Below, in pieces: positions 576-52,542 of a stretch of DNA of 64,000 bases (the first letter of the stretch is position 1; the number at the start of each line of letters is the position of its first letter). A program made the translations under genes and the position numbers. The stretch comes from Dicyema japonicum. Taxonomy: Eukaryota > Animalia > Dicyemida. Location: assembly GCA_011109175.1 (NCBI GenBank), contig RDEW01000026.1:575695-639694 (forward strand), read 5' to 3'. The notes beneath the pieces were generated by a model. That model searched no databases. It had not been told where the DNA came from and saw nothing but the letters and a program-made list of their open reading frames with translations.

Positions 576-1091
576 TCAACCATCCAAAACCTCATGATTT
601 ACTCCTTTCCCTTGACAATATAAAGGAATAGCACAAGAATGACTCCACATATAATAATCTTCCATATTATACATTTCGGTCATTAAATAAGGCATTCCAG
701 AATATATTTCTGATTCTTTACTATGTGATCCATTAAAGATTGTTATACAAACACCGTCTTCATTTTTCCTAAGTTGAACAGAGTTTGGATCAGTCCAGAT
801 TGTGATCTCTCCCAGCTGTTCCACAATCTTTTTCGTCATTCCATAAGTGAAAGCAGCACGTTTACAAGCTAATGTTATCTTTGAGTCTCCTCTTAATGGT
901 GAATTTCGAATACAACGACTAGCAGATCCAAATAGTTGATGATTGGTATCCCAAGATTGAAAATATTTCTCACAAAGAACAGTATGTAAGTTTGTTTGGA
1001 ATTCCTGTATTATATTATGCTTTATTCGGTTGGTTAGTAGGTTTTCTATGCATTTTAAAGTAGATTCAAGCTCATTATTGAATGGATACAT
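576..1091 (-). CDS. BTG/Tob (APRO) family anti-proliferative / CAF1-binding protein, intronless, 171 aa
   Basis: Box A-like QSWDTNHQLFGSASRCIRN and Box B-like LGEITIWTDPNSVQLR match the BTG consensus (HW..P.KG.AYRCIR; LP.ELTLWVDP.EV..R). Complete ATG-TGA ORF. Confidence 0.85.
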   Translation of the reverse strand: MYPFNNELESTLKCIENLLTNRIKHNIIQEFQTNLHTVLCEKYFQSWDTNHQLFGSASRCIRNSPLRGDSKITLACKRAAFTYGMTKKIVEQLGEITIWTDPNSVQLRKNEDGVCITIFNGSHSKESEIYSGMPYLMTEMYNMEDYYMWSHSCAIPLYCQGKGVNHEVLDG

Positions 1092-2522
1092 AATATAAAT
1101 AATATATTTTAAATAAAATTTATTGTTTTAATTTTAAATTTATTTATTAATATAATATTAATAACATTCATTTTATTTTCACTTTATTATTGAGATCATA
1201 ATCTTTTCTCAAATATTTTTTTATTTTATATTTAAAATGATATTTTTTTGTGTAAATATCTTAAAATGTCTGAAATACATTAATATAGAATCGATTGTTT
1301 AATTGAATATAAAAATCATTAATATTTTGGTGACGAACAAGTTTTATTAGAGAACGTCAATAGGTTTATAATATATTACTTAGAATAGCCTGATTTACTT
1401 TCCACTATGTAACGATTACTAGCACTTTTATATTGCACTTTAATGGGATAGTCATTTAAATATTAACTATTTAGAATTTGTTCTTTATGATCCAACTAAT
1501 ACATTCCGAAAATGAAACATTACCTTCTTCCAATTTATAAAAATGTATTTATTAATGACAATAAAGTTAACAAATGATCATACAGCGACCGCCTTGACTG
1601 AGTGGCTATTCCCTATCTGGATGTATAAAATATTTTCCTTATCGGACATTGTTCTTATTATTTGTTTCATTCATTTATCTTATTATCTCTAATGACATTA
1701 AACCCTGGACTACCAAAATTCTTATTTATAGTAATTAAAGGAAAAATCTGAAAACTACAGAAACATGGAATTGACGTATGCCATTTACAATAGACAAAAT
1801 TATTACTACACACCTTGAGTTGTGATGGGGAATCATTAATCTAGTTACGAAAATCTACGAAAATCCCTCATTCCCAGTTGAATTCTTAAAATCTCAATAG
1901 ATAACAGACATTGTTATTAATTCTATAGTTTGATGGAGATAATAATTTTCTATACAAGGCAGATCAAACAAGTTACTTATAATTTCAGCTATTATGAAAA
2001 AACCAAGCCTGCCTCAACTGTAGTGTGCAAAATGATTAATTTAAAAAGAGTATTTAATTTATCAGACTTCATCCACTGTAAAAGACATCTTTCGTCTTTA
2101 TTAGTTTTAAATCATCGATAATCAATATGTTCCATGTAAAATGGAAATGAATTCCATGTGTTTCATTTCATAGTGTCAGATGGATATGTTTTTCTCTTGC
2201 ACAGCACTTAGAAAATAAAACCACTTAATTTCCCTATCGGGTTCTCAATGGCGAACATCGAAGGGCATAAAGACTTCACTCTGTCTAAACATCATCAAAC
2301 GGCATGCCTGTTAAAACCCTAAGTATATAAATGATGTTAAACAGTAGGCAAAAGTATTAATATTAAAAACATGAACCAAAGGACCTATTTCTTAATATTT
2401 GAGAAGTAACAACCATCATGCAGCTCAACTTTCAATATAGAACAAAATTATTATTTCTTGAAGACGCAAGCATTCAATATTTTTATTGATGAATCATATT
2501 TTTATGAATCATAAGATAAATT

Positions 2523-4030: not shown

Positions 4031-4299
4031 AGCCTTTGGTGGCTCTTTAAGTTTAAAAGTAGGCTCTTTTTTTAACTTCGACACCATTATTAGCAAAGAA
4101 AATTAAAGAGGGAGTTATTTGGCCTCATGCCGCAAGTCCTGTAAACCCTTGGACTCTTCTCTGCTCTATCAGACCCCTCTTATCGTTTATTCTGTGCTGC
4201 AACATACAAGTCAATTATGTCATCTCTTTTTAGGTAGTTTTCCATCCTTTTTTCTGCTGCATCTATTATCGACATTACTAGCAAATTTTCATCATCATC

Positions 4300-4548
4300 T
4301 AGCTTTTCGGTTATAATCCTCGTCCTAAGAAATATGTGTCTTGTAATCACATCTTTCAAGGTTTCCGTTGATCTACAATGTTCAATATTTTTAAATAAAC
4401 CTATCTTGAACCTCTGCGAGAAAACAGCGCCCTGCTTCGCGCTCGATTCCTCCAAGGACCCAATGATCTTGGATCCTTTGCTGATGCTCGTCCTTTTCTT
4501 ACACTTCATGCATTTCCATACATGTTTATCGACCACTAGAATCAACAC
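4300..4548 (-). mobile_element. Merlin/IS1595-like transposase remnant
   Basis: VWKCMKCKKRTSISKGS (W.C..C...SIR.GS) joined to RSTETLKDVITRHI..RTRIITE (R..ETL...I..HV.PG..I.TD); most of the DDE region is missing. Confidence 0.45.
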
Positions 4549-4830
4549 AAAAAAGTGACAATAAATCTATTTATTACATATTTTCAAAAATAACCTTGCA
4601 CAGTCAGTAGAAAATTGTGTTCCTTGTCAATCGCCGTGCTGCACACCACTTTATGGATTCCTCCAGACTCTGTGTACCCATCAGAAGCCTCAACAGGGAG
4701 AGTCGTTCGGCTTGAATAGCAGCACGACTCATTATTTCTTGTGGAATTATGCTCTTGCAAAGTTACTCTAAATATGCTGATGTAATTAATAATATAATTA
4801 TTTATTTTAGTTACTCGTTTACTTGTTTTA

Positions 4831-6457: not shown

Positions 6458-7190
6458 TCATAAATTCTTTAGGATAGGATAATCATCAATGATGATTGTC
6501 AGATTGCCATACTGCGTCAACAGCAAATTTCCTCTTGTATCTGCAGACTGATTTAAGAGCCAGAGAGGGTGTTTAGCATTCAAATCGCCGCATATAACGA
6601 CTTCGTTCCAAATCTCCAGTGCTGATAAGTCCGGCATACCGTAATGTTTCGGAAATGAGCCGCCCAGAAGCGGAATATACATGTTTACAAAATATAGTCT
6701 TCCTTTTGTTGTGCCAACAGATATTCCGATTGTCTCCGTGGTTTCATCACTCCCCAAAAGTTTCTTCGCTTCGAGTGTATGGTCCTCATACTTTATGTTT
6801 TTTCTGATTAATATAAGTAGTCCTCCTCCATGTTTCTTAGTGCGATCGGCACGTATTATGTTGTATCCGGGAAAGAAGGGCGTAGTATCTTTCGCTGATA
6901 GCTTCGATTTTAGGATGAGCATGATGTCAGCTTTAAGTTTAACGATCAGAGTTCTAAGTTCAATAATTTTGCCTTTTATTCCGTTCACATTCATTTTTAT
7001 AACGGAGATCCGGTCCTTTGACTTGTGTAGGTTGCGAATCCGAGAAGCTGTAGACAGACCAGTAATCCGTCGATCAGGGGTGAAATGTACCCCCGGTAGG
7101 AAGAGAGCTAATGGCTCTTTTTGGAAATGCTTTAGGAGCATTTTGAGCGCCTCCAGAGTTGTTGCATCCGGTGAGCCACATGACGCCACG
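6458..7190 (-). mobile_element. Ingi/Vingi-like LINE, intact 5' end plus AP-endonuclease, 3' truncated
   Basis: MNVNGIKGK...GYNIIRADR..HGGGLLILIR...NMYIP...ICGDLNAKHPLW APE motifs. 5' UTR starts with GTGGCGTCATGTG and folds into an HDV-like topology (7112-7187). Confidence 0.85.
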
Positions 7191-7217
7191 CTAATAAATA
7201 TATTAATAATCTTTATC

Positions 7218-8816
7218 TCCCTGGGGAGTACCAACATTGCACGTAAATTCACGGGAAAACGTCTTACCGACCCGCATTCTGAGCTTCGTGTTAGATAGCA
7301 ACACTCTGATCATACTGACAGAATCAGCGTCCAAGAATTGTTCCAGATCCTGAGAAGTAGACCACGGCGGACCGTATCAAAGGCCCTAGAGAGGTCTATT
7401 CCCAGGACTGTTGTTGCACTTTCAAATCTCTGGTTGATAGCACAGCGCCACTTGTGGCTCCATACTACATCCGCAGTGGATCTTCCTGTCATGAATCCAC
7501 TGTGACTAGGGGATAGATAGTTGTCCACTTGTTCTCTGATTCGGTTCAGCGTAAGTAATGCCAGAAGTTTCCGTAAAGTGTTTAGCAGGAATATTGGACG
7601 TAGGTTTTCAACAGGCCCAGCATGCTTGTTAGGTTTTTGTATTGGTATTAATAGTCCGGATCCAAGAGCGGGGTATTATTTTTTTATAAACATAGAGTTG
7701 AGTAGTTCTGCCAACTTATCTATTAGTGAAGGTGGCCCGTATTTGAGAAGTTCTGAATTGATTCCATTCAGTCCATGAGAGCAACCATTCTTAAGTTTGA
7801 CCATTGCATTTGAGATTTCGCCAGGTGTGATATCTTTATCAAGTTGGGTGGCGTATCCACAAGTATGATCAGATATTTCTCCGCGGACAGTTAGTATATC
7901 CTCGAAATACGACGCAATATATTCAGCCTGATCTTTGGGATTTGTTAAGAATCTTCTATTTCCGTCATGGAGTTTGAGTTTGTTCGATTGTTTTCTTCTG
8001 TTGAACTGACGGATTGCAGTGAACATTTTTGATGAGTCTTTTAACTGTTCAACTTCTGCAGTTCTTAGATCAAGTAGGTTAGTGGCATGCTTCTTATTCA
8101 AAATCTTTCTGGTTTTCTGGGTGGATCTTCTTATAGACTTCAGGATTTGTTTCCTGTCCGGATCAGACGTATTTTCCAATTGTAATCTTAGTTCCTTTTG
8201 TTTTTTAATAAGGGCGGGGACATCTGGATGTATACATTTTTTAAACAGTGCTGAGGACCAGGTTCCGATATTCCCATTTGCTACCGAAATGATCCCTTTC
8301 ATTGTCTCCGCCGAGGTGCCTCCTGGAGGAAGTCCGGGATCTAGGTTTCGTAAGAATTTCGTAAATGATATTTCTCGTAGAACAGGTCAAGTTCTTCCGG
8401 ATTTTTTAGGATACGTCCACTGTGTGGTAACGTTGATAATTGAGATTAGTCTCCTCGAATTTCTGATTGATCTTGTACGTAGTTGTAAGACAATGATTCT
8501 GTCATTGACTTTCCAGTAACGATATACTCTGGGAATATAGTCCTTGTGTATGGCAAAGCCTTGTCCATAATGCCTCGATTCCGAGAAAAGCAATAGTAAC
8601 CTGTACTTTGCATTTGTTTCATCGAGTCCATTTTTTATTTTAGTCTCCTGCAGGCAGCCCCCATATTTCTTAACATCAGAATATAGAAGCTGCCTTTTAG
8701 CCACGTTATTCAGGCCTCTGACATTGAAGGTTAGGATAGTCAGGTCATTAAATTGTTCTGAATCCTTTGCAGACATAGGTGCAAAAGATGCACGTCACCA
8801 CCTCAACCAAAAAAAA
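7218..8816 (-). mobile_element. RTE-like (APE+RT) LINE, intact 5' head, internally deleted, 3' truncated
   Basis: LTFNVRGLN..CLQETK..RHYGQGFAI (APE); KNG..GLNGINSELLKYG; GFMTGRSTAD..LGIDLSRAFD; GTPQGD (RT). Head T8-GGTTGAGGTGGTGACGTG about 32 nt before the ATG at 8776. Confidence 0.9.
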
Positions 8817-10965: not shown

Positions 10966-11260
10966 TGCCGGATGGCAAAGTGGTTAGGCGTCGGGCTAAA
11001 GTGGCCTAGGATACGGGTTCAATTCAAGCTGCTGTTCACCTGGTGGAAGGTTTCCAAGCATCTACGATGCTCTGAAAAGGGTTTTGACGAGTGACGCCGT
11101 CATCAGTGGATATTCACTGCGGGAGTGGATTGTCTAGAAAGGACCCACACACAAGAAGAAACAAAGATCTTGGTTCTGCGATTAGTTGAAGTTTGTGTAC
11201 TGCCTATGCGGAGCTATAAATATTGTGGCTCTCGTGAAAAGGCCGTTACTATTATTATTA
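10966..11260 (+). mobile_element. tRNA-derived SINE, copy 2
   Basis: A box TGGCAAAGTGG, B box GGTTCAATTC, shared body, (TAT)n tail. Confidence 0.85.
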
Positions 11261-11579
11261 AAAAATGATCATCGCAGAAAAAATCGACGTTTCGTTCCTC
11301 GCTAGATTGCAAAAAATCAACTGAAAAAATATCGAGTTTCACGTGCGTCGTTGCTTTTTAGCGTAGCCAAATGTCTCAGCTTCTTGAGGAAACAAAGCGA
11401 TTTCCCGATTATTTTTCTAGTTATCTCAATTACGATAACGTGTACAAATAGCTTCGTATTTTTTCTCCTTAGCTTTCATAGCTTTTTTATTGACATACAG
11501 TGTGTCTACTACGCTCCCGGCAATGTTGGATGGACAAAGGGGTTGATGCACGTGTATCATATACCAATGGAGTCTTACC

Positions 11580-11760
11580 GCGTGGCGCCATGTGGTGCTG
11601 CGTGGTTAATTGAGTGAAGTTTCTGCTTGCTTGTCTGTTCCTCCTCTCTTCCTAATAGAGTGGCGTCATGTGATCCACCTGTCTAGGTGACGCCCAGTGC
11701 CAGGATCATTTGCTCTTCCCCACTCCACTGGAGAGGTTTCCACAACTGCATGTAGTGGAC
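11580..11760 (+). mobile_element. Orphan 5' end(s) of the Ingi/Vingi-like family
   Basis: gtggcgtcatgtgatccacc (11660) aligns with gtggcgtcatgtggctcacc (7170-7189, minus); downstream ggatcatttgctcttcc resembles gagccattagctctcttcc. A second, degenerate head lies at 11581. Confidence 0.55.
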
Positions 11761-11909
11761 GTCTTATTTTTTATGCTGATTCCGGATGGACTCTTTCTGT
11801 AGAAGTGGAAACTAGATACATTTAATTAGTTTTTTTACTTTAACTTTTTTCTCGGTGTATCCGGTGGTAATAAATAAATAAAATAATAATAAAATAAATA
11901 AATAATAAT

Positions 11910-12250
11910 GGCTTTCCACCTCGAATGGAGAGATTGTAATTCCGTCCCTCTATCCAAGCCAACCGGTTCAAGGATGGAGGGGTATTCCAGAACTCGCTTA
12001 ACAATTCTTTTGATCGTCTTATGTCTTGGGAATCGTTCGCGCTTCTTCGGAAAGAAAGGGCATGATGTCCATAACAGTCGACGGTACCACCGCACCGGTA
12101 CTTGTAAGTCTGGCAAATTTCAGTCCCAGTCTGATGGAGATATCGGTGCAAAAAGTTTCATCGTCAAGGTGGATCCCGACGCTTCCGACCGGGAGCTGTT
12201 GATCCAATCGTCACTCCATTCGCATCTTCCTGTCACTGGACAGAAGCGTA
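11910..12250 (-). mobile_element. CRE-clade retrotransposon fragment (zinc knuckle / RLE region)
   Basis: LPVGSVGIHLDDETF..ISIRLG, CGGTVDCYGHHALS, RFPRH..IVKRVL..PSILEPVGLDR in shifted frames. Confidence 0.75.
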
Positions 12251-12658: not shown

Positions 12659-15097
12659 ATGTGTGCCACTTTTAGATACGACTCCGACACCTCAATCAAG
12701 CTCAAACTCGACTTACAAGAGTCTAAAAACTCAATAGATTCGCAGTTAGCCAAGGTAAGGCAATTCGTCTACGCTGTGTTCGATGGAAGCAACAAGCCCT
12801 CAATCTGGACTATTTATAAGGTATTATAATACATTAGTTGAGTCTATCAACATCATCCTCGAGAGATCTGACGGAAGGTGTCTCGGTGATGTCATCAATG
12901 ACTTGTTGGACAACAAAATCAACGATTTTCACTCTGAATTGGATTCCGAACCAGAAAATGAGCGATTTTTGAGAAAAATTTGCGACTATTGGGCTTTCTA
13001 CGACGGAAAAATCGTTTATACCTATTTAACCATAGAAATTCCTTAGCCTCGTCTTCATTAACTACGACAGAGTCTCCGGTCTAAAGACCGTCTCCGAATA
13101 CGCCCAGGACCATTTCATACGTCATCTTCTTTTCCCTGAAAGGATGAAAATTGGTTTTCTGCGCTCCCTTAATGACCTGCTGCGTGAAGAACGGAACGGA
13201 GGAGTCCCGAATACAGTGACCCGAGATGCCGTACACTTGCTCACAGTACTGGGGGTTAGTTTTCTTATCAAGTAATAGTTGGAGGAGAGCTATGCCTTTG
13301 AAGCTATCTGCGAGGAAATGACGAATTACTTTCAGTCTAAGACTTGTGATTTTACGGTAAAGTAGTTTTCCTGATCGAGGACAGGTGAGATGTTCGACCA
13401 TATCGAGAAGAGGATCATGGAAGAAGAATCCCGTTTCCAAATGTTCCGTGATATAAGGCCGCGGTGGATTTTGTTGTTATTCCAGACTAGTGGCACGCGT
13501 GCACTCTCTGGTGTTTTTCCAGCGCGTTGAAGAGCTCCTTGGAGACCGTATACAATAATTTGATTTTTGTAGGACTTGCGAATGTACTCAACGCCGGAGA
13601 CTGGGAGATGCTGGGACGATTCCGTGATTTCTTTATTAATTACGGAATTCAGGAAAGATTGATCAACCAGATATGCCGTTATTTTGGAGTTTCAGTTATT
13701 TTTACTAAAGAAATGGTTTGATGACGTCGTTTCTAGCTCTCCTGAGTCCATTTTGATTACCCTTCTCGCAGGTAGAAGGATATTTTACCACAGAGACGAT
13801 AACCAAGGCCTTAACTATGATAACCCACGTGTTTGAGGACCATGGAGACATCCTCAAAAGCATCCATCTATCAGTGGAGAACTCCTTAGTTCCCATCCAC
13901 AAATCAATACCATCAATGTTGAACAACCACATCCGATGTCTCCTCACTTCTGGGATCGTCCCTGACCTTAGTTCCCGACTGGACGACTGTATCTATATAA
14001 GTACTTGTCTTCGAGGTAGCAGTTGTTTCCACGTAGGCTCCTTTGACCAATTCATGAGCTTATTCATTTACGAGACCAGCTTCAGATTGGTCTATTCTGA
14101 ATACCGATCCCTTGAAGATGAGGCATTGATGTTGGCCAAATTAAGGCAAGGTGCTTAATTGATTTATTCTAGAGATCGGTCCTTTTCGCATGGATGCGCT
14201 CGACAAGATTCTCTCGAACTACAAAGTCGCTATTGGGAAGACAAAGGACTACTACGCCCACATGGGTGGTTTTTTATTTGTTATTAATAGAGGATCCCTC
14301 TCTTGAGTTTCTGTTCCGTCCCCTGGCGATGTCCGTGAACATTTCCGCGTCGGCTCCGTGGATAAAACCGGAGATTGTACATGTGCGTATTCCGGAAAAG
14401 GTTGAGTACTAACTTAGCCTAGTTATCGCGCTTAAAGGACAGTTTTGAGCGGTTTTTTTCCGAGAAAAATGAATTTTGTGAGCTCTCATGGATAAACGCG
14501 ATTGATAGATGCACTTTAGGAGTGTTTCTTAAGGTGAACGTATCGGTAATTATAGGGCGGAGTGAGGGATGTCGAAATGACCTTATTGCAGGCTGTGGTG
14601 TTACTTCTTTTCGACGGTGAAGATCGGCTCAGTTTCGCGGAAATTCAAGAAAAAACGGAAATCCGTAATTTCGTGCTTATTTCAAGATCCTGACATATTG
14701 GAAAGGGTCCTGAGTAGCATCACATGCACGGGACTGTTACTTGAGGACGACGGGTACCTCTTTAATCCACTCTGTGAGTGTCCCCTTGTCTATATACTGC
14801 CCCCATTGGATTCGCAGGTTACTCGAGAAGTTGTGAAATCCACGGAAATGACGGTTAAGAACCGACAGGAGATTGTGGGAGGTGCCATGATGAGCGTTTT
14901 GAAGGAAATGAGGACTGCGACGATGAATGAACTGAAGGAGAGGGTTGTTGAGAGGCTTAAGTTCTCCATGGAGGTTGATGGAGATGTGATGATAGAGCAA
15001 CGATTTAAAGGAGGTGATTGATGAATTGGTAGGTAGGGGATATATGGAGAGGCACCCTGACTTAATTGATGTGTATAAGTATAAGAGTTTTTCCTGA
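12659..15097 (+). CDS. Divergent full-length cullin (about 696 aa), 16 exons separated by 15 micro-introns
   Basis: Exons 12659-12820, 12843-13013, 13036-13254, 13279-13356, 13390-13463, 13486-13547, 13573-13688, 13711-13771, 13794-14015, 14037-14150, 14173-14265, 14291-14400, 14423-14533, 14556-14664, 14687-14973, 14996-15097 total 2091 nt (697 codons including TGA) with no internal stop. Spliced peptides align to cullins: FLSLVFINYDRV, LREERNG, HIEKRIMEEESR, DQFMSLFIYETSFRLV..EDEALMLAKLRQEIG, MSVNISASAPW, FERFFSEK..LSW, MTLLQAVVLLLFD..LSFAEIQEKT, NRQEIVGGAMMSVLKEMR, LKEVIDELVGRGYMER..DVYKY. Start codon and intron 4 boundaries are uncertain; subfamily not assignable. Confidence 0.9.
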
Positions 15098-15989
15098 GTT
15101 ATAATTTTTGAGTATTTTGGTGTTTTTTTATTTATTTAATAATATCGCAAATAAAAACCAAAACATATAAATTAACTTATGGTACTTATTGCGAGTTTCA
15201 AATTTCTATCACTATTATCAATAATCATTTTCGACAGAAAGTACATTTAAGAGATCGCCGACCTAATGGAAAACGTATATTTTGAATTCTCTGTTGTTCA
15301 ATATACTGATAGTTGATTTCCTGTCTGCTAGGTAACTAAATACAATATGTAATGTATGATGACGTACTACTGTCTCCCATATCGAGTAAAATCTCGGAGA
15401 AGAGGCTAATTGTACAGTGCTTAGCATAGTATATTGTACACTTAATTTCTCAATTATTTAAGGGAAATAGTTTCATTTTTTTATTTATTCCGACTTTATT
15501 TTATATATAGAGCTTCAATGAGTTTTTTGCTATCATTAAATTCCTAATTGCGGAACAAACAGGAATTTTTTTATTTTTACTGATCAATGAAAATCGTACA
15601 TTTGAATTTTCAACATTTTGTGTGTCCACCATGTGCCGAATATACGTACAAACGCGTTTTTTCATTGAATTAATGAGTTTCTCTGTTAAACTTTGTGGGA
15701 ATCAAGGTGTTTTTGAAAATTCAAAGATGCGATGGCAACATCTTGATGGCATGAAGCAATCAGTGTCATCAGGATATGAAAGGATAGTCTATTCTAGTTA
15801 GCCGCCAAGCTTGATAAAAGTAAATTGAATAAGGTCAGAGAAAGAACCGAACCACGGAACTCTATTAGGTAAGATCTACAGCATGAGTATGTGTACATGA
15901 TAATGGAATGTTAAGAGGATCAGAAAAAAATGAAAGTAGCCAGATTTCTATCTAATCCAGTTCTCTGTGTTGAGGATCTTCATTCTCAA

Positions 15990-16300: not shown

Positions 16301-16521
16301 CCTTTGGGTAGGAAGAAGGCTAATGTTTGCATATTGACATATCAGTAAGCTAGCTTGGTCTCGGAAGGATATCATACGTTTTCTGTTAGAGACAAGTAGT
16401 ATGACAGATTAATGGAGACGTGTGTACTGAGTGAATCTTTCTAAGGGTTTTCCAGAAAAAACGGATGCCAGAATATTTAATTTATTTTATTAACCCCAAA
16501 TAAATAAATTAATATATTTTT

Positions 16522-18548
16522 GGTTGAGGTGGTGACGTCCCTCTATAGCACATATGTTTTTCTCACGTCTAATATCTAACTGCCCTTTTTCTGTGGGTAC
16601 CCTGAATGTAAGAGGACTCAATCCAACATACAAGAAGCTTCAGCTGTCACGTGATTTGGATCACTATAAGGTATCAGTATGCTGCCTACAGGAAACAAAA
16701 ATAACTGACGACACATGCATGCGGGTGGGAAATTATCATTTGATTACCCTTCCAACAACGTGTCGTCACTATGGACTTGGATTTGCTATTCATCACATTG
16801 TATAGTCGTATATCTCGGATGTGGTCGTTACAGACAGGATTGCGGTACTGCAAATCCGGTGGGGAAGCAAACCAAACTCTACAGTGACAATCATCAAACA
16901 TATACGCCCCGACTGGAATTAGGGGCATCTGCCAATCCAGAAGAACTAGACGAATTCTACTCCGCCTTCATAAGGGTTTACAACACTCTCAATTCTTCAT
17001 ATTTTTGCTTAATTGCCGGGGACTGGAATGCCAAAGCAGGAAAAGCCAGATCTGGAGAAACTTGTATCGGATCTCATGGAAGAAATCGGCGAAACACGCC
17101 CGGAATGGCATTAATCCACTTTTGCACTTCCTTGGATCTGTTTTTGTGCAATACGGCATTCCGTCACCCAGCGAGACACAAGACGAAAAGGACTGGAACT
17201 AGGAAGGATTTGCAAGGAAATTACATAAAAATATATAATCAAATTGACTACATACTATGCAGACGAGGTCACAAACATCTCCTCGTAGACTCCAGGTCAT
17301 ATGGAGGATTAGAGACATATAGTGATCATAAAATTGTGGTTACTCGCATTGGACTATACAAAGTCCATAACCAAATGAAAACACCTTCCAATAAAAAGCA
17401 GGAGCAATATGATATCCAATTATTACATGACAAGTCAACTCAACAGAAATATGCGTATCAACTAAATCTTGAACTTAATGATGTCGACGAAACTAAACCT
17501 GTTCATATTATTTGGGACAAAGTCACAAAGTCGATAAAAGGTACAGCATGTGATGTGTTGGGAAGTATTACAAAACCCCGTAAATTTTACAATCATGATA
17601 TTTGCGTCCTATCAGAAAACCAGAAAGCCTTGAGATTGAAGATAGAAAACTCAAGGTCTCCAGAAAAGGCCAAGGAACTTCGGCAACAACGAAACTGAAC
17701 ATTATTAAAAATCAAGCAAATTCAGAAATCCCTAACGGCTAAAGAAATAGAAAAACAAATTGAAGACATTGAAAAATATAAAGATGGAGTAAAATGTTAA
17801 AAGATATTCAATTAATTAATAAGAAAAAGAGTGCCCCATAATAATCAATGACATCCTTGGCAGAATAATTATCGATGAAAAGGACAAAGCAGCTACTATA
17901 TCTGCTTATTACTATCATATGCTCAACTGGGACAACGAAATAGGCTATAAATTTGGTGCACAAGTCAAGCATGGTTTGGACATCCCAATAAACACACAAG
18001 AAACACTGGATGCAATTAAAAAATTGAAAAATGACAGATCGGCAGGACCAGATGTAATAGTAGGAACTTATAAAGTATGCCCAGTGAAGTTGGTAACAAT
18101 CATTACCAATATACTCAACAAAATATTTGAAGAAAACACTACGTTAGACATTGGCAAGGGTTGGTTAATTCCACTGCAAAAACCGGGAAAACCCAAAGGG
18201 CCCCTTTCCAACCTAAGACCAATCATCCTACTAACTACACTGCGAAAAATTTTGTCAATTATTACTTTGGAAAGAATCAAAGACAAGGTGGAGTATTTTC
18301 TGTCACTAGGACAAAGTGGGTTCCGGTCAGGCAGATCCACTGCCGATGTCATTTGGACACACAGATGGTCAAGTCCTCTTTGCCAAAAAAATAAAAAGTG
18401 CATAGATGTTCTCGGAATAGATATGTCAAAAGCGTTTGACTCGGTTCATAGAGGCAAACTTCTTGAAGTACTCACAAGCTTCCTAACAACGGATGATGTC
18501 AAAATTATACAAAAACTACTGCAGAATACGCAACTAGCAACCAAACTC
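16522..18548 (+). mobile_element. RTE-like LINE, intact 5' head, APE + partial RT, 3' truncated
   Basis: Head TTTTTGGTTGAGGTGGTGACGT; GTLNVRGLN, CCLQETK, AGDWNAK, YNQIDYILCR, YSDHKIVV; GKPKGPLSNLRPIILL, QSGFRSGRSTAD, GIDMSKAFDSV. Confidence 0.9.
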
Positions 18549-18599
18549 ATTTTTTTATTTATTCCGACTTTTATAAACAGTTGATGTAGATAAGCCTGG

Positions 18600-21793: not shown

Positions 21794-24700
21794 CTTGAGC
21801 TATTAAATATAATTGTTAAATCTGCGATTCGGGATAGACTGAAAAAGGGCAAAATAGGACACAATTTGAAAAAAATGGTGTCAATTTGAGCAGATAGAGA
21901 AATATGAGATTCGGGATTGACTGAAGAAGTACCAACATTATCCGTCTAAATTTGAGAATTGGTGATAATTTGAGCTATTACTTTTATATTGATTATCTGC
22001 ATTCGGGGTTGAGTAAAGAAGTACCAACATAATCGGACACAATTTTAAATTTGTCACTTTATGCATTAGTCAAATTTGAGATTCGGGATGACTGAAGGAG
22101 TACCAACATTATCAGACACAATTTGCGAATTAGTCTTAATTAGAGCTATTATATATCTAAGTGTAGTCCATTCGCGATTCGGGATCTACAGAAGAAATAC
22201 CAACGTTATTTAATAAATGTCAGATTAGAGTTTTTAAAATATTAACTGTATACATTTGAGATTGATTATCTGCATTCGGGATTGAGTAAAGAAGTACCAA
22301 CATAGGACACAATTTGAAAAAATTGTTGTCAATTTGACAGTTAGTCAAATTTGAGATTCGGGATTGACTGAAGGAGTACCAACATTTCAGACACAATTTG
22401 CGAATTAGTCTTATTAGGAGCTATTATATATCTAATTGTAGTCCATTCGCGATTCGGGATCTACAGAAGTAGTACCAACGTTATTTAATAAATGTCATAG
22501 ATTAGAGTTTTTAAATATTAACTGTATATATTTGAGATTGATAATCTGCATTCGGGATTGAGTAAAGAAGTACCAACATAGGACACAATTTGAAAAAATG
22601 GTGTCAATTTGAGCAGTTAGTCAAATTTGAGATTCGGGATTGACTGAAGAGTACCAACATTCTCAGACACAATTTGCGAATTAGTCTTAATTAGAGCTAT
22701 TATATATCTAATTGTAGTCCATTCGCGATTCGGGATCTACAGAAGTAATACCAACGTTATTTAATAAATGTCATAGATTAGAGTTTTAAAATATTAACTG
22801 TATACATTTGAGATTGATAATCTGCATTCGGATTGAGTAAAGAAGTACCAACATAGGACACAATTTGAAAAAATGGTGTCAATTTGAGCAGTTAGTCAAA
22901 TTTGAGATTCGGGATTGACTGAAGGAGTACCAACATTCTCAGACACAATTTGCGAATTAGTCTTAATTAGAGCTATTATATATCTAATTGTAGTCCATTC
23001 GCGATTCGGGATCTACAGAAGTAATACCAACGTTATTTAATAAATGTCATAGATTAGAGTTTTTAAAATATTAACTGTATACATTTGAGATTGATAATCT
23101 GCATTCGGATTGAGTAAAGAAGTACCAACATAGGACACAATTTGAAAAAATGGTGTCAATTTGATCAGTTAGTCAAATTTGAGATTCGAGAATGACTGAA
23201 GAGTACCACATTATCCGTCTAAATTTGAGAATTGGTGATAATTTGAGCTATTACTTTTATATTGATATCTGCATTCGGGGTTGAGTAAAGAAGTACCAAC
23301 ATAATCGGACACAATTTCCAAATTTGTCTCACTTTATGCATTAGTCAAATTTGAGATTCGAGAATGACTGAAGAAGTACCAACATTATCAGACACAATTT
23401 GCGAATTAGTCTTAATTAGAGCTATTATTTATCTAATTGTAGTCCATTCGCGATTCGGGATCTACAGAAGAAGTACCAACGTTATTTAAATAAATGTCAG
23501 ATTAGAGTTTTTAAAATATTAACTGTATACATTTGAGATTGATTATCTGCATTCGGGATTGAGTAAAGAAGTACCAACATAATCGGACACAATTTCCAAA
23601 TTTGTCTCACTTTATGCAATTAGTCAAATTTGAGATTCGGGATTGACTGAAGAAGTACCAACATTATCAGACACAATTTGCGAATTAGTCTTAATTAGAG
23701 CTATTATTAATCTAACTGTAGTCCATTTCGCGATTCGGGATCTTACAGAAGTAGTACCAACGTTATTTAATAAATGTCATAATTTGAGTTCTTAATTAGA
23801 GCTATTATATATCTAATTGTAGGTCCATTCGCGATCGGATCTACAGAAGTAATACCAACGTTATTAATAAATGTCATAGATTTGAGTTCTTAATTAGAGC
23901 TATTATATATCTAATGTAGTCCATTCGCGATTCGGGATCTACAGAAGTAATACCAACGTTATTTAATAAATGTCAAAGATTTGAGTTTTTAAAATATTAA
24001 CTGTATACATTTGAGATTGATAATCTGCATTCGCGGATTGAGTAAAGAAGTACCAAAATAGGACACAATTTGAAAAAATGGTGTCAATTGATCAGTTAGT
24101 CAAATTTGAGATTCGAGAATGACTGAAGAAGTACCAACATTAGTCCGTCTAAATTTGAGAATTGGTGATAATTTGAGCTATTACTTTTATATTGATTATC
24201 TGCATTCGGGATTGAGTAAAGAAGTACCAAAATAATCGGATACAATTTCCAAATTTGTCTCACTTTATGCATTAGTCAAATTTTGAGATTCGAGATTGAC
24301 TGAAGAAGTACCAACATTATCAGACACAATTTGCGAATTAGTCTTAATTAGAGCTATTATATATCTAATTGTAGTCCATTCGCGATTCGGGATCTACAGA
24401 AGAAGTACCAACGTTATTTAATAAATGTCAGATTAGAGTTTTTAAAATATTAACTGTATACATTTGAGATTGATTATCTGCATTCGGATTGAGTAAAGAA
24501 GTACCCAACATAGGACACAATTTGAAAAAATGGTGTCAATTTGATCAGTTAGTCAAATTTGAGATTCGGGATTGACTGAAGGAGTACCAACATTCTCAGA
24601 CACAATTTGCGAATTAGTCTTAATTAGAGCTATTATATATCTAATTGTAGTCCATTCGCGATTCGGGATCTACAGAAGTAGTACCAACGTTATTTAATAA

Positions 24701-27700
24701 ATGTCAGATTAGAGTTTTTAAAAAATTAACTGTATACATTTGAGATTGATTATCTGCATTCGGATTGAGTAAAGAAGTACCAAATAATAGGAAACAATTT
24801 CCAAATTTGTTGTCATTATGCATTAGTCAAATTTGAGATTCGGGATTGACTGAAGAGTACCAACATTCTCAGACACAATTTTGCGAATTAGTCTTAATTA
24901 GAGCTATTATATATCTAATTGTAGTCCATTCGCGATTCGGGATCTACAGAAGTAGTACCAACGTTATTTAATAAATGTCAGATTAGAGTTTTTAAAATAT
25001 TAACTGTATACATTTGAGATTGATAATCTGCATTCGGGATTGAGTAAAGAAGTACCAAAATGTTCGGATACAATTTCCAAATTTGTCTCACTTTATGCAA
25101 TTAGTCAAATTTGAGATTCGGGATTGACTGAAGAAGTACCAACATTATCAGACACAATTTGCGAATTAGTCTTAATTAGAGCTATTATTTATCTAATTGT
25201 AGTCCAGTCGCGATTCGGGAAAAACAGAAGTAATACCTACGTTATTTAATAAATGTCATAGATTTGAGTTTCTTAATTAGAGCTATTATATATCTAATTG
25301 TAGTCCATTCGCGATTCGGGATCTACAGAAGTAATACCAACGTTATTTAATAAATGTCATAGATTAGAGTTCTTAATTAGAGCTATTATATATCTAATTG
25401 TAGTCCATTCGCGATTCGGGATCTACAGAAGTAATACCAACGTTATTTAATAAATGTCATTAGATTGAGTTTTTAAAATATTAACTGTATACATTTGAGA
25501 TTGATAATCTGCATTCGGATTGAGTAAAGAAGTACCAACATAGGACACAATTTGAAAAAATGGTGTCAATTTGATCAGTTAGTCAAATTTGAGATTCGAG
25601 AATGACTGAAGAGTACCAACATTATCAGACACAATTTGCGAATTAGTCTTAATTAGAGCTATTATATATCTAATTGTAGTCCATTCGCGATTCGGGATCT
25701 ACAGAAGTAGTACCAACGTTATTTGATAAATGTCAGATTAGAGTTTTTAAAATATTAACTGTATACATTTGAGATTGATTATCTGCATTCGAGCATTGAG
25801 TAAAGAAGTACCAAAATAATCGGAAACAATTTCCAAATTTGTCTCACTTTATGCAATTAGTCAAATTTGAGATTCGGGATTGACTGAAGAAGTACCAACA
25901 TTATCAGACACAATTTGCGAATTAGTCTTAATTAGAGCTATTATATATCTAATTGTAGTCCATTCGCGATTCGGGATCTACAGAAGTAGTACCAACGTTA
26001 TTTAATAAATGTCATAGATTTGAGTTCTTAATTAGAGCTATTATTTATCTAATTGTAGTCCATTCGCGATTCGGGATCTACAGAAGTAATACCAACGTTA
26101 TTTAATAAATGTCATAGATTAGAGTTTTTAAAATATTAACTGTATACATTTGAGATTGATTATCTGCATTCGGGATTGAGTAAAGAAGTACCAACATAGG
26201 ACACAATTTGAAAAAAATGGTGTCAATTTTGATCAGTTAGTCAAATTTGAGATTCGAGAATGACTGAAGAAGTACCAACATTATCAGACACAATTTGCGA
26301 ATTAGTCTTAATTAGAGCTATTATATATCTAATTGTAGTCCATTCGCGATTCGGGATCTACAGAAGTAGTACCAACGTTATTTAATAAATGTCAGATTAG
26401 AGTTTTTAAAATATTAACTGTATACATTTGAGATTGATTATCTGCATTCGGGATTGAGAAGAAGTACCAAAATAATCGGATACAATTTCCAAATTTGTCT
26501 CACTTTATGCAATTAGTCAAATTTGAGATTCGGGAATGACTGAAGAAGTACCAACATTATCAGACAACAATTTGCGAATTAGTCTTAATTAGAGCTATTA
26601 TATATCTAATTGTAGTCCATTCGCGATTCGGGATCTACAGAAGTAGTACCAACGTTATTTAATAAATGTCATAGATTTGAGTTCTTAATTAGAGCTATTA
26701 TATATCTAATTGTAGTCCATTCGCGATTCGGGATCTACAGAAGTAATACCAACGTTATTTAAATAAATGTCATAGATTTGAGTTCTTAATTAGAGCTATT
26801 ATATATCTAATTGTAGTCCATTCGCGATTCGGGATCTACAGAAGTAGTACCAACGTTATTTAATAAATGTCAGATTAGAGTTTTTAAAATATTAACTGTA
26901 TACATTTGAGATTGATTATCTGCATTCGGGATTGAGTAAAGAAGTACCAAATAATCGATACAATATCCAAATTTGTCTCACTTTATGCAATTAGTCAAAT
27001 TTGAGATTCGGGAATGACTGAAGAAGTACCAACATTTCAGACACAAATTGCGAATTAGTCTTAATTAGAGCTATTATATATCTAATTGTAGTCCATTCGC
27101 GATTCGGGATATACAGAAGTAGTACCTACGTTATTTAATAAATGTCATAGTTTAGAGTTTTTAAATATTAACTGTATACATTTGAGATTGATTATCTGCA
27201 TTCGGGATTGAGTAAAGAAGTACCAACATAGGACACAATTTGAAAAAATGGTGTCAATTTGATCAGTTAGTCAAATTTGAGATTCGGGATTGACTGAAGG
27301 AGTACCAACATTCTCAGACACAATTTGCGAATTAGTCTTAATTAGAGCTATTATTTATCTAATTGTAGTCCATTCGCGATTCGGGATCTACAGAAGTAAT
27401 ACCAACGTTATTTAATAAATGTCATAGATTAGAGTTTTTAAAATATTAACTGTATACATTTGAGATTGATTATCTGCATTCGGGATTGAGTAAAGAAGTA
27501 CCAACATAGGACACAATTTGAAAAAATGGTGTCAATTTGATCAGTTAGTCAAATTTGAGATTCGGGATTGACTGAAGAAGTACCAACATTATCCGTCTAA
27601 ATTTGAGAATTGGTGATAATTTGAGCTATTACTTTTATATTGATTATCTGCATTCGGGGTTGAGTAAAGAAGTACCAACATAATCGGACACAATTTCCAA

Positions 27701-30700
27701 ATTTGTCTCACTTTATGCATTAGTCAAATTTGAGATTCGAGAATGACTGAAGAAGTACCAACATTATCAGACACAATTTGCGAATTAGTCTTAATTAGAG
27801 CTATTATATATCTAATTGTAGTCCATTCGCGATTCGGGATCTACAGAAGTAGTACCAACGTTATTTAATAAATGTCAGATTAGAGTTTTTAAAATATTAA
27901 CTGTATACATTTGAGATGATTATCTGCATTCGGGATTGAGTAAAGAAGTACCAAAATAATCGGAAACAATTTCCAAATTTGTCTCACTTTATGCAATTAG
28001 TCAAATTTGAGATTCGGGATTGACTGAAGAAGTACCAACATTATCAGACACAATTTGCGAATTAGTCTTAATTAGAGCTATTATTAATCTAAGTGTAGTC
28101 CATTCGCGATTCGGGATCTACAGAAGTAGTACCAACGTTTTTAAATGTCATAGATTTGAGTTCTTAATTAGAGCTATTATATATCTAATTGTAGTCCATT
28201 CGCGATTCGGGATCTACAGAAGTAGTACCAACGTTATTTAATAAATGTCATAGATTTGAGTTCTTAATTAGAGCTATTATATATCTAATTGTAGTCCATT
28301 CGCGATTCGGGATCTACAGAAGTAATACCAACGTTATTTAATAAATGTCATAGATTAGAGTTTTTAAAATATTAACTGTATACATTTGAGATTGATAATC
28401 TGCATTCGGGATTGAGTAAAGAAGTACCAACATAGGACACAATTTGAAAAAATGGTGTCAATTTGAACAGTTAGTCAAATTTGAGATTCGGGATTGACTG
28501 AAGGAGTACCAACATTTCAGACACAATTTGCGAATTAGTCTTAATTAGAGCTATTATATATCTAATTGTAGTCCATTCGCGATTCGGGAACAACAGATGT
28601 AGTACCAACGTTATTTAATAAATGTCATAGATTAGATTTTTAAAATATTAACTGTATACATTTGAGATTGATAATCTGCATTCGGGATTGAGTAAAGAAG
28701 TACCAAATAATCGGATACAATTTCCAAATTTGTCTCACTTTATGCAATTAGTCAAATTTGAGATTCGGGATTGACTGAAGGAGTACCAACATTCTCAGAC
28801 ACAATTTGCGAATTAGTCTTAATTAGAGCTATTATTAATCTAAGTGTAGTCCATTCGCGATTCGGGATCTACAGAAGTAGTACCAACGTTATTTAATAAT
28901 GTCATAGATTTGAGTTCTTAATTAGAGCTATTATATATCTTTATTGTAGTCCATTCGCGATTCATGATCTACAGAAGTAATACCAACGTTATTTAATAAA
29001 TGTCATAGATTTGAGTTCTTAATTAGAGCTATTATATATCTAATTGTAGTCCATTCGCGATTCGGGATCTACAGAAGTAATACCAACGTTATTTAATAAA
29101 TGTCATAGATTAGAGTTTTTAAAATATTAACTGTATACATTTGAGATTGATAATCTGCATTCGGGATTGAGTAAAGAAGTACCAACATAGGACACAATTT
29201 GAAAAAATGGTGTCAATTTGACAGTTAGTCAAATTAGAGATTCGGGATTGACTGAAGGAGTACCAACATTTCAGATACAATTTGCGAATTAGTCTTAATT
29301 AGAGCTATTATATATCTAATTGTAGTCCATTCGCGATTCGGGATCTACAGAAGTAATACCAACGTTATTTAATAAATGTCATAGATTAGAGTTTTTAAAA
29401 TATTAACTGTATACATTTGAGATTGATAATCTGCATTCGGATTGAGTAAAGAAGTACCAACATAGGACACAATTTGAAAAAATGGTGTCAATTTGATCAG
29501 TTAGTCAAATTTGAGATTCGGGATTGACTGAAGGAGTACCAACATTCTCAGACACAATTGCGAATTAGTCTTAATTAGAGCTATTATATATCTAATTGTA
29601 GTCCATTCGCGATTCGGGATCTACAGAAGAAGTACCAACGTTATTTAATAAATGTCAGATTAGAGTTTTTAAAATATTAACTGTATACATTTGAGATTGA
29701 TTATCTGCATTCGGATTGAGTAAAGAAGTACCAAAATAATCGGATACAATTTCCAAATTTGTCTCACTTTATGCATTAGTCAAATTTGAGATTCGGATTG
29801 ACTAAAGAAGTACCACATTATCAGACACAATTGCGAATTAGTCTTAATTAAGCTATTATTAATCTAAGTGTATTCCATTCGCGATTCGGGATCTACAGAA
29901 AGTACCACGTTATTTAATAAATGCGATTAGTTTTAATTAGAGCTATTATATATCTAATTGTAGTCCATTCGCGATTCAAGATCTACAGAAGTAGTACCAA
30001 CGTTATTTAATAAATGTCATAGATTAGAGTTTTTAAAATATTAACTGTATACATTTGAGATTGATTATCTGCATTCGGGATTGAGTAAAGAAGTACCAAC
30101 ATTGGACACAATTTGAAAAAATGGCGTCAATTTGACAGTTAGTCAAATTTGAGATTCGGATTGACTGAAGAAGTACCAACATTATCAGACACAATTTGCG
30201 AATTAGTTTTAATTAGAGCTTTTATATATCTAAGTGAAGTCCATTTGCGATTCAAGATCTACAGAAGTAGTACCAACGTTATTTAATAAATGTCATAGAT
30301 TAGAGTTTTTAAAATATTAACTGTATACATTTGAGATTGATTATCTCCATTCGGATTGAGTAAAGAAGTACCAACATAGAACACAATTTGAAAAATGTGT
30401 TAATTAGAGCAGTTAGTCACATTTGAGATTCGGGATTGACTGAAGAGTACCAACATTATTAGACACAATTTGTGAATTAGTCCTAATTAGAGTTATTATA
30501 TATCTAATTGTAGTCCATTCGCGATTCGGAATCTACAGAAGTAAGTACCAACGTTATTTAATAAATGTCAGATTAGAGTTTTTAAAATATTAACTGTATT
30601 CATTTGAGATTGATTATCTGCATTCGGGATTGAGTAAAGATGTACCAACATTGGACACAATTTCCAAATTTGTCTCACTTTAATGCATTAGTCAAATTTG

Positions 30701-39301: not shown

Positions 39302-40590
39302 ATCATTACACTATCTAAGAAAGGTATTCTTATCTATTTGCGATTTGGCATAGATAATGTATTCTATCCAATTTTTTGATGCCATTTGAGTATTTGAACA
39401 TTTCATGGAAGTACAGCATCATTCTACATTCTAAAAAATTGGTTTTAGTTAATCCAGTTTCTCCAAATATAACTGGATGCCATTTGAGATTCTTGATCAC
39501 TTCATTAATTAATTAGTTATTCAAAAAAACTTGTGAATGCAATATATGTTCTTTCCATATAAATCTAGTTAATTTTAGATTCAATATAAATACACTATGA
39601 AAGTTATTTAAAACTTCTTGGGAATTGTTATGTAATCTAAGTTTAATCCATAAAAATGTAGTCGATTAGAGAATCAAGATCATTACATGATCTATAAAGT
39701 TATTCTACAGTACATGATATGCACTATATTGTATCCATATTATTGTAATGAATTAGATAATCATGATCATTACACTATCTACGAAAGGTATTTTATCCTA
39801 TTTGCCATTGGCATAGATAATGTATTCTATCCAATTTTTTTATTTCATTTGAGTATTTGAACATTTCATGGTGTACAGACATTCTACATTCTAGAAAATT
39901 GGTTTTGGTTTTACATATATTACTGGGATGCGATTTGAGATTCGTGATCACTTTATTAAGTAATAAGTTATTCAAAAAAACTCGTGAAATGTTATGCACT
40001 ATATGTTCTTTCAATACAAATAAGTCAATTAGAGATTCAAGATAATTACACTCTCTAAGAAAGATATTTAAAACTTCTTGTTAATTGTAATGCAATCTAG
40101 GTTCTGTCCATATAAATGTACTCGATTAGAGATTCATTCAAACTTTTGTGAATTGTTATGCAATCTAAGTTTAATCCATAAAAATGTAGTCGATTAGAGA
40201 ATCAAGAACATTACATGATCAATAAAGTTATTCTACAGTACTTGATATGCACTATAGTGTATCCATATTATTGTAATGAATTAGATAATCATGATCATTA
40301 TACTATCCACGAAAGGTATTCTAAACTATTTGCGATTTGGCATAGATAATGTATTCTATCCAATTTTTTGATGCCATTTGAGTATTTGAACATTTCATGG
40401 TGTACAGACATTCTACATTCTAGAAAATGGGTTTTGGTTTTACATATATTACTGGATGCCATTTGAGATTCTTGATCATTTCATTAAGTAATAAGTTATT
40501 CAAAAATACTCGTGAAATGCACTATATGTTCTTTCAATACAAATGAAGTCAATTAGAGATTCAAGATAATTACACAATCTAAGAAACATT
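39301..40590. repeat. Second, diverged repeat family (about 90-95 bp subunits in a roughly 5-subunit higher-order unit), segment 1
   Basis: Recurrent gatcattacactatctacgaaagg, ttgagtatttgaacatttcatgg and aagttattc motifs; continues at 42469-42634, 42961-43830 and 56803-56940. Confidence 0.85.
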
Positions 40591-48330: not shown

Positions 48331-48869
48331 CAATGAAGAAAATCTTTCGTTGAACTATTATATGAAGATCATTAAGTTTATGAATATTTTTGTAGTGCTG
48401 TAATAGACGGTACATGATAATTTAATTTAAGGAATAGTTTTTTTATATATTTTTCTACAAAATAATTTTTTAACAAATGTCAGTTGAGGAAGCCTGTTGC
48501 GTGGATAGAGAACGAGTTCCCTCGGAGTATGGCTATTTCAATTTTTTGTCTTAGCCATAACCCTTCTCGTTAATCCCTTCTTTCTGGCCAAGCAATCCTC
48601 CAAGTTCTCGCAAGAACTCAGCCGTCATTGGACCAACGGCTCCGATGATTCGGTTTTTATATAACTATTCCTTATTTTTTTGAAGTGGAATATCATCATT
48701 TAAAAATGCTTTTAACCAAAAAGATATCCAGTTTTCTTCTCTTTCATCAGAAAGAAAAACTTAAGTGGTTGATGTCTTTGTCTAGTTCTGTTTGATGTCT
48801 TTGTCCATTAAGATGTTGATCGATGTAGTATTGTTTAGATGATTTTACCTATCTTAGAGCATTTTTGGC

Positions 48870-52114: not shown

Positions 52115-52542
52115 TATAAGATAGAATTAATTAATTTATTGATTTATTTTTCATTAAAAATTATTGATTTCTAACGGCTTAACAAATAATAATAATAATA
52201 CAAACCTTGAAAAAAAATAAAGGAAATTAAGGAAGAGTTAAACATCTTAAGACAGGAAAGAGATCGTTTAACGAAAATAGCTATAAATTTTATTTTTGAC
52301 GAAGAAGGAACATATTATAGGAGAAAGGCTACAAGTTGTGATTTTTTTTGTTGAAGATATTGAGTTGAAACTCAAATCCATAGAAGTAATTAAATCGTTT
52401 AGATTAATTTTGTTCCCACCTTCGGAGTTCACTCCCATTTCGCTCCTGCGGAGATAAGTTTTTTCCTTAGTGAATTATATTTAACGAATTAAACTATTTT
52501 TATTAAAAAAACTGATTGTTATAGTAAAAATTATCAAATATC

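Follow-up and report, generated by a model that had tools for sequence, protein, structure and literature searches.

The introns of dicyemids are very short and uniform in length (Aruga 2007, PMC2222250; Zverkov 2019, PMC6543705; Lu 2019, PMC6736024). For Dicyema japonicum, a parasite of octopuses, Hadjez 2026 (PMC13644364) reports a 5′ splice site reduced to GTa and a 3′ splice site reduced to AG, and its length-sorted logos of September 2026 display weakly conserved A residues that lie farther from the AG as introns lengthen. Motif counts over 41 dicyemid introns gave no branch-site motif (Irimia & Roy 2008, PMC2483917). In PMC13644364, the myxobolid myxozoans Thelohanellus kitauei as well as Myxobolus rasmusseni are described with a median intron length of 22 bp, reduced motifs, and a matching A pattern, but they are cnidarians with comparatively TE-poor genomes, whereas the window studied here is rich in TEs and satellite. 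Introns of Paramecium (about 25 nt) and of the Bigelowiella natans nucleomorph (18–21 nt) are also short, uniform, and dense and have a very weak 5′ consensus, but these are protist and nucleomorph systems in which motif counting yielded no branch signature (PMC2483917, PMC2222250). Stentor coeruleus has introns of 15–16 nt with a branch A at a fixed position (PMC9505925).

Here, we analyzed a window of 64,000 nucleotides from D. japonicum (contig RDEW01000026.1, positions 575,695 to 639,694, forward strand), in which a divergent cullin gene carries 15 candidate introns. Dicyemid micro-introns, reportedly also described by Ogino in 2010 (Gene 449:70), are GT-AG introns of about 22–27 nt, uniform and dense, with GT(a)...AG as their only splice-site motif and with an A upstream of the AG whose distance grows with intron length. 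The introns of the cullin gene resemble them in all of these features.

The cullin gene and its candidate introns

The coding span of the gene, which is CUL4-like at its C-terminus, covers positions 12659 to 15097 on the forward strand. Excision of 15 GT...AG segments leaves 16 exons and one stop-free frame of 697 codons, which starts with the ATG at 12659 and ends with the TGA at 15095–15097. In a retention check, 14 of the 15 segments shifted the frame or introduced a stop, and the sole in-frame, stop-free segment was the 21-nt one at 14016–14036. Ten segments are 22 nt long and the others 21, 24, 25, 25, and 33 nt, giving a median of 22 nt with 14 of 15 within 21–25 nt. The density is 15 introns in 2.09 kb of coding sequence (7.2 per coding kb). 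These results bear out the initial annotation, which had claimed that removal of these segments, all 15 with GT...AG ends, restores the cullin frame, that ten are 22-mers and the rest 21, 24, 25, and 25 nt plus one ambiguous case, and that there are about 7 introns per coding kb; the coordinates and lengths check out. It had also stated that introns so short are known in dicyemids, which is correct, as they have been published from 2007 on.

As a control, a dynamic-programming finder of spliced-ORF chains was applied to the locus and to 40 dinucleotide shuffles. The chain score was 384 at the locus against a shuffle maximum of 185, and 318 against 156 when only 22-nt introns were used. Without a coding model the finder was too permissive and mis-modelled the cullin gene too, so it was kept for the shuffle control only.

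Homology was searched exon piece by exon piece, and the bit scores are therefore those of single pieces. Pfam Cullin (PF00888) was matched at profile positions 504–537 and 546–578 of 620 (26.0 and 11.3 bits, under the cut-off of 33.2), in colinear order, and Cullin_Nedd8 (PF10557) at positions 1–34 and 42–62 of 63 (12.9 and 16.4 bits, under the cut-off of 36.9), colinear with the Cullin matches. The weak PDB matches of the two longer C-terminal pieces are exclusively cullins (CUL4A/B and CUL3). For the last exon, Cullin-4B tops the PDB list and the other matches are unrelated. In one of the two longer pieces, the lysine of a V-L-K motif aligns with that of I-M-K in CUL4B and is a candidate for the conserved neddylation lysine. 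No homology was detected for the N-terminal two-thirds of the protein in the piecewise search, including Pfam. Neither the proteins of the window nor a transcript-derived cullin were found in protein collections by word search, exhaustive phmmer, or exact look-up. Judged by its frame and its matches, the host gene appears to be an intact, fast-evolving, divergent cullin.

Several junctions are constrained individually. For introns 2 (13014–13035) and 10 (14151–14172), both 22 nt with T14/A16 (positions counted from the donor), the segment is the sole frame-restoring GT-AG solution. At intron 13 (14534–14555; 22 nt, T14/A16), the Pfam Cullin profile continues past the junction, from position 537 to 546 with 7 unaligned residues between. 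At intron 15 (14974–14995; 22 nt, T14/A16), a gap-free alignment with human CUL4B (2do7_A) spans the junction, with residues up to 63 on one flank and from 67 on the other and no indel at the junction. Introns 7 (13689–13710) and 8 (13772–13793) are likewise 22 nt long with T14/A16. Junction 4 has several frame-keeping solutions, of 18 (13362–13379), 33, 39, 45, 51, and 54 nt; the candidate boundaries used here (13357–13389, 33 nt) enclose a CTGAT with its A at position 18. The putative intron 9 (14016–14036; 21 nt, C14/A16) is the weakest candidate, with 52% A+T and no Pfam match in the piecewise search of its stretch; being in frame and stop-free, it could be retained as 7 codons. Intron 11 (14266–14290, 25 nt) has T16-n-A18, and with another in-frame donor, at 14269, its length would be 22 nt.

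Contigs of three sequencing runs (X1, X3, and X4) cover the gene unspliced, at even depth and with no joints, as expected of genomic DNA, indicating that the DNA retains the segments. A further run, X5, gave a few short contigs at 13659–13768 only, one of which spans intron 7 unspliced. Two 58-nt X5 contigs begin exactly at exon 8 (13711), which may reflect either a splice bubble or a SNP bubble. We consider it very likely that the segments are real introns, spliced from the RNA.

The remainder of the window consists mostly of transposons and satellite, with remnants of Helitron, MULE, LINE, and BED or Tc5 elements, a satellite of 17 kb, and a single intronless ORF of BTG, a family characteristic of animals. 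The G+C content of the window, about 35%, is near the 36.7% of D. japonicum (PMC6736024). No second intron-bearing host gene that would replicate the motif was found in the window; in a frame-restoring GT-AG scan of the whole window with three control dinucleotide pairs, noise drowned any signal beyond the cullin gene. The satellite at 22–39 kb was considered as a hidden micro-intron gene and rejected, because its repeat units are stop-rich and long frames are absent. A search for snRNAs gave no Rfam match within the window.

A position-specific T-n-A signal

The 15 introns of this one gene, on which all signal statistics are based, share a position-specific signal. An A stands at base 16 from the donor in 12 of 15 introns (p ~6e-4 by shuffling within introns, with correction over columns). 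At base 14, 13 of the 15 have T and the remaining two C (p ~0.012 for T in the same shuffle test). The pair of a pyrimidine at 14 and A at 16 occurs at 12 of 15 true donors but at only 3 of 38 decoys, which were GT sites of the same pre-mRNA with their first AG 21–25 nt away (Fisher p 6e-7). In the rest of the window, 13–14% of other 21–25-nt GT..AG candidates carry it. The initial annotation had reported T14 in all ten 22-mers and A16 in nine, with A15 in the exception; each of these counts was confirmed, the exception being intron 14 (14665–14686) with T13-n-A15.

The five introns that are not 22 nt long bear on the end to which the signal is anchored. Among them, A is found at +16 in three and at −7 in one, and A16 is kept in the 21-nt, the 24-nt, and one 25-nt intron. 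The 24-nt case is intron 3 (13255–13278) and the 25-nt case intron 6 (13548–13572), both with T14/A16 from the donor; in the latter the A lies 9 nt from the 3′ end. These counts tip the balance slightly towards a signal anchored to the donor and not to the acceptor, although five introns are not significant alone. A donor-fixed A agrees with the genome-wide statement of PMC13644364.

The T-n-A pattern resembles a branch site of the yUnAy type in minimal form. The human consensus yUnAy has two conserved positions, namely the A and the U that precedes it by two bases (PMC2367711), which correspond to A16 and T14. It is reasonably probable that the branch point is A16 or, alternatively, the nearby A at 15 or 18. 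The signal is sharper in the cullin gene (A16 80%, T14 87%) than the "weakly conserved" A of dicyemid introns, and the main texts on dicyemid introns drawn on here do not mention a T two before the A or an exonic G at −1. Another reading of T-n-A, as selected in-frame stop codons, was rejected, since only 6 of 15 introns have A or G at position 15 and the intron phases differ.

The splice sites themselves hold little information on the intron side. At donor position +3, 6 introns have A, 5 have T, and 4 have G, with no further consensus beyond GT, and 9 of 15 acceptors have T at −3; the initial annotation listed the variants of both splice sites correctly. In 11 of 15 cases the exon ends in G (base −1; p 8e-5). 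A T-run crosses intron positions 10–14, and A+T content is 72% in introns against 55% in exons. A rule that takes the first AG whose end lies 21 nt or more from the donor gives the correct acceptor for 14 of 15 introns, the exception being junction 4, unless it is differently bounded. Earlier AGs at positions 16–18 (ending at 17–18) are passed over, such as those at 16–17 in intron 1 (12821–12842; 22 nt, T14/A16) and at 17–18 in intron 3, where splicing to it would expose a TAA. Acceptor choice accords with the classical rule that takes the first AG some bases beyond the putative branch site.

Stentor offers a comparison for a fixed A (PMC9505925). Its introns are likewise tiny GT-AG introns in which a U-run is followed by a branch A at a near-invariant position, and its A-to-AG distance of 5 nt equals that in the 21-nt intron of the cullin gene. 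The lariat loop, in contrast, is 10–11 nt in Stentor but predicted at about 16 nt for the cullin introns. Furthermore, the Stentor A is constant from the 3′ end (position 10 of 15 and 11 of 16), whereas that of the cullin gene is seemingly constant from the 5′ end; a Stentor-type constant distance to the 3′ end was not seen in the small sample of non-22-nt introns.

A proposed minimal intron plan and its alternatives

The best explanation, and in our view a likely one, is that a genome of dicyemid type here carries ordinary micro-introns of the U2-type GT-AG spliceosomal class, which follow a minimal intron plan. The donor would have hardly any intron-side consensus past GT, with the exon before it usually ending in G. 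Next would come a short run rich in T, followed by a degenerate yUnAy-like branch site with its A about 16 nt from the donor, a span that is probably the shortest 5′ss-to-branch distance tolerated by a dicyemid-type spliceosome. The acceptor would be whichever AG comes first from about 5 nt beyond the branch A onward. With the A set from the donor and the first AG taken, the length variation of 21–25 nt would arise 3′ of the A. In human introns the branch point is 18–40 nt away from the acceptor, with a polypyrimidine tract after it, whereas the cullin introns have 5–9 nt from the A to their end and no tract. Since only 3–7 nt separate the A from the AG, there is no space for such a tract, and the acceptor would probably be chosen late, by proximity to the branch, and not by U2AF65 binding. 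We tentatively propose, while holding it somewhat short of probable, that the dicyemid spliceosome may place the branch at a fixed span of ~15 nt from the 5′ss, need U-n-A there, and then use the first AG at least ~5 nt further on, without a polypyrimidine tract or U2AF65-type recognition.

The initial annotation had instead proposed recognition mainly by geometry, as GT+13+A+4+AG, which it took to imply a modified, streamlined spliceosome. Taken fully, this would be a two-sided ruler read by a much modified spliceosome that has lost U1, U2AF, or SF1-type recognition, with sequence nearly irrelevant. The uniform length and the fixed T-n-A of the 22-mers stand, since 10 of 15 introns are exactly 22 nt long and their A is fixed to both ends, and donor positions +3 to +6 show no visible consensus. 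The fixed distance to the acceptor seems not to hold, since three of the five non-22-nt introns keep the A at position 16 from the donor with an A-to-AG distance that varies between 5 and 9 nt. The G at exon base −1 indicates that recognition involves more than geometry, and the T two before the A, the T-run, and the A+T contrast carry sequence information too. Moreover, Stentor with its tiny introns (all snRNAs) and the myxozoans (conserved U2 snRNA) retain U2AF (PMC9505925, PMC13644364). We regard the two-sided ruler as unlikely.

About as improbable, or slightly more so, is that the introns are real but T14/A16 marks a protein-binding site, a U6 or U5 contact, or a by-product of T/A-rich sequence, with branching at another A such as A12 of intron 12 or A19. 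The 72% A+T of the introns and the further A residues at positions 12–19 of several of them are in keeping with this, as is the failure of motif counts to reveal a dicyemid branch signature (PMC2483917). Intron 12 (14401–14422; 22 nt, T14/A16) contains a perfect TACTAAC at positions 7–13, which would place the alternative branch A at position 12. However, composition is controlled for in the shuffle tests, most decoys with matching geometry lack the pair, and A16 is the only A within positions 12–19 in introns 5, 6, and 9; in intron 5 (13464–13485; 22 nt, T14/A16) the 3′ half has no other A save that of the terminal AG. The T at −2 of the A also fits the two most conserved yUnAy positions (PMC2367711). 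A non-spliceosomal origin, as a pseudogene with small insertions, assembly artefacts, or DNA-eliminated sequences, would accommodate the N-terminal two-thirds without piecewise homology, but it is very improbable given GT-AG ends in 15 of 15 T-rich segments with such uniform lengths, a long ORF on removal that scores far above shuffles, and the gap-free CUL4B alignment over one junction. Independent DNA runs also repeat the sequence and contain no form without the segments.

In a genome already known to be unusual, the cullin gene is an ordinary one, and its kind of intron is already known for the lineage. Earlier publications cover the phenomenon and hint at a movable A, so what the locus contributes is mainly a tidy worked example, with three minor details: the T two before the A, the G at exon base −1, and the first-AG rule. 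Introns of 22 nt are close to the physical limit of the spliceosome, and with a lariat loop of ~16 nt and 3–7 nt from A to AG, simultaneous textbook binding of U1, U2, and U2AF would not fit. With a clean, position-specific branch signal, dicyemids would become an animal model in which minimal intron recognition could be studied. If true, the donor-anchored ruler would mirror the situation in Stentor, where the branch A is anchored to the acceptor, and dicyemids would be the first animal system to conserve 5′ss-to-branch spacing instead of branch-to-3′ss spacing.

Reading frame and identity of the cullin gene

Direct reading of the sequence revealed that excision of 15 segments from positions 12659-15097 of the plus strand leaves a single frame of 697 codons, running from ATG to TGA. 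All 15 segments start with GT and end with AG; ten are 22 nt long, and the others measure 21, 24, 25, 25, and 33 nt. Retention of 14 of them shifts the frame or introduces a stop codon. Only the 21-nt segment at 14016-14036 could stay without disturbing the frame or adding a stop, and its splicing is putative. Two junctions admit no frame-keeping GT-AG pair other than the 22-nt one, and at most others the frame-keeping alternatives are shorter than 20 nt or longer than 30 nt. Junction 4 (listed as 13357-13389) is more permissive, the frame being kept alike by removal of 18, 33, 39, 45, 51, or 54 nt. Intron 11 has tandem in-frame donors 3 nt apart (GTGGTT, 14266-14271): the donor at 14266 gives a 25-nt intron and that at 14269 a 22-nt intron, either keeps the frame, and the difference is one Gly codon. 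This resembles the NAGNAG situation, but on the donor side.

The locus reached a spliced-ORF score of 384, whereas none of 40 dinucleotide shuffles exceeded 185; when only 22-nt introns were allowed, the figures were 318 and 156. What the initial annotation observed in the 15 segments is thereby confirmed in full, as regards the frame, the GT and AG ends, and the shuffle and decoy tests (for the latter, see the next section). The sequencing-run contigs that cover the gene are unspliced. They show the segments in genomic DNA, evenly covered and with no form that lacks them, which argues against excision at the DNA level.

One run, X5 (2017, labelled 'DNA?'), contains a 79-nt contig that spans intron 7 (start 13689) unspliced within 13659-13768, and two 58-nt contigs whose first base is precisely that of exon 8 (13711). 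The latter could reflect a bubble in the assembly graph between spliced and unspliced forms or a plain SNP bubble. The word share of X5 for the cullin gene is 0.53 in the run index, yet almost no X5 contigs lie over the gene.

The predicted spliced product appears to be a very divergent cullin. Four Pfam matches lie in profile order along exons 13-16: Cullin is matched by exon piece 13 (profile positions 504-537) and exon piece 14 (546-578), and Cullin_Nedd8 by exon piece 15 (1-34) and exon piece 16 (42-62). The PDB matches of exon pieces 14 and 15 are weak and all cullins (CUL4A, CUL4B, CUL3); for exon piece 16 the best match is Cullin-4B and the remaining matches are unrelated. Over the last intron (start 14974) the alignment to human CUL4B (2do7_A) runs on without any break, with residue 94 of exon 15 pairing with residue 63 and residue 3 of exon 16 with residue 67, so excision of exactly 22 nt gives no indel. 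No protein of the window was found in large protein collections. An AATAAA at 15150-15155, 53 nt past the cullin stop codon and within an A/T-rich stretch, is a plausible candidate polyadenylation signal.

Splice signals and a putative branch point

Acceptor choice obeys a simple classical first-AG rule: in 14 of the 15 introns the acceptor is the earliest AG whose end lies 21 nt or more from the donor. AGs ending at position 17 or 18, on or beside the putative branch A, are passed over in three introns; in intron 3 (start 13255), a TAA would be uncovered if the early AG were used. Beyond GT, the donor carries no intron-side consensus. The exon before it ends in G in 11/15 cases (p 8e-5), and A+T content is 72% in introns versus 55% in exons. 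The initial annotation had these introns recognized mainly by geometry. That interpretation is supported in part: geometry does contribute, but the exonic G and the A+T contrast indicate that recognition combines it with a little sequence and composition.

Counted from the donor, position 16 is A in 12/15 introns and position 14 is T in 13/15 and C in two. When each intron's interior was permuted and the best column taken, p was ~6e-4 for A16 and ~0.012 for T14. As an internal control we took all GTs of the pre-mRNA for which the same rule (earliest AG ending 21 nt or more away) yields a length of 21-25 nt. A pyrimidine at 14 together with A16 occurs at 12/15 real donors versus 3/38 decoys (Fisher p 6e-7), and in 13-14% of ~1,250 same-geometry candidates in the remainder of the window. 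Ahead of A16, positions 10-14 form a T-rich run, and in three introns A16 is the sole A within positions 12-19. The three introns without A16 carry the same T-n-A moved by -1 (A15) or +2 (A18), and one of the A18 cases sits within CTGAT. The T and the A of this motif correspond to the two positions conserved in yUnAy, the human branch consensus (PMC2367711).

The position-specific A may be the branch point. Among the five introns of other lengths, an A at +16 from the donor is kept in the 21-nt, the 24-nt, and one 25-nt intron, and an A at -7 from the acceptor in just one. This points toward anchoring at the donor, though five introns alone prove nothing; the trend agrees with a genome-wide remark on D. 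japonicum and myxobolids, according to which the distance between AG and the conserved A residues grows with intron length (Hadjez et al. 2026, PMC13644364). If this A is the branch point, its position may be set by a donor-anchored ruler. Intron 12 (start 14401) contains a perfect TACTAAC, whose branch A would be position 12, a fair warning against over-reading A16.

The best reading would be that conventional U2-type splicing works here at the smallest size it allows: the lariat loop would measure ~16 nt, the U-rich stretch would carry a minimal branch helix, and the nearest AG would be selected late. A polypyrimidine tract could not fit, since only 3-7 nt separate the putative branch A from AG.

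Surroundings of the gene

The rest of the window (transposable elements, a satellite, and an intronless BTG ORF) holds no second intron set for comparison, and no snRNA was found within the window. The second host gene is a BTG-family ORF (579-1127, minus strand; Pfam BTG E 6.6e-17), which is intact and single-exon, has an intronless coding part, and would encode 171 aa if translated from the ATG at 1091; neither relatives nor exact copies of its protein were found in protein collections. A Helitron remnant (48838-56815, minus) contains Helitron_like_N (54744-55526, minus; E 4e-57) and a PIF1-like helicase (53078-53626, minus; E 8e-52), many frame breaks separating its open stretches. A MULE transposase domain (40920-41630, plus), a Tc5-type HTH (44210-44536, minus), a weak BED finger (4183-4566, minus), and a reverse-transcriptase fragment (62508-62906, plus) are also present. 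LINE fragments at 6461-7309 (minus) and 16709-18581 (plus) bear endonuclease and RVT_1 domains. The cullin flanks (11000-12200 and 16400-17000) show DNA-run word depth 100- to 3000-fold above the single-copy gene and are thus high-copy repeats. The 17-kb satellite (21988-39302) has ~100-nt subunits in ~276-nt higher-order units, with steady positive GC skew, many stops, and no long frames, and so does not resemble a hidden micro-intron gene.

Relation to known micro-introns

Dicyemid micro-introns are an already known class. Very short, uniform introns were described in Dicyema in 2007 (26.2 +/- 1.9 nt, n = 16; PMC2222250). Ogino et al. 2010, as cited in PMC6543705, found them in 40 D. japonicum genes, and two papers of 2019 extended the description to the whole genome (PMC6543705, PMC6736024). 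Irimia & Roy 2008 found the dicyemid 5' boundary to be the weakest known, with hexamer counts giving no branch motif (PMC2483917). Hadjez et al. (Sept 2026) reported reduced GTa/AG signals and proposed A residues in length-sorted logos as the branch site (PMC13644364). A branch A at a fixed position has a precedent in the still smaller introns of Stentor (PMC9505925). To these the present locus adds a clean example, defines the signal more sharply (T at +14, A at +16, and G at exon -1), and supplies a simple rule predicting 14/15 acceptors.
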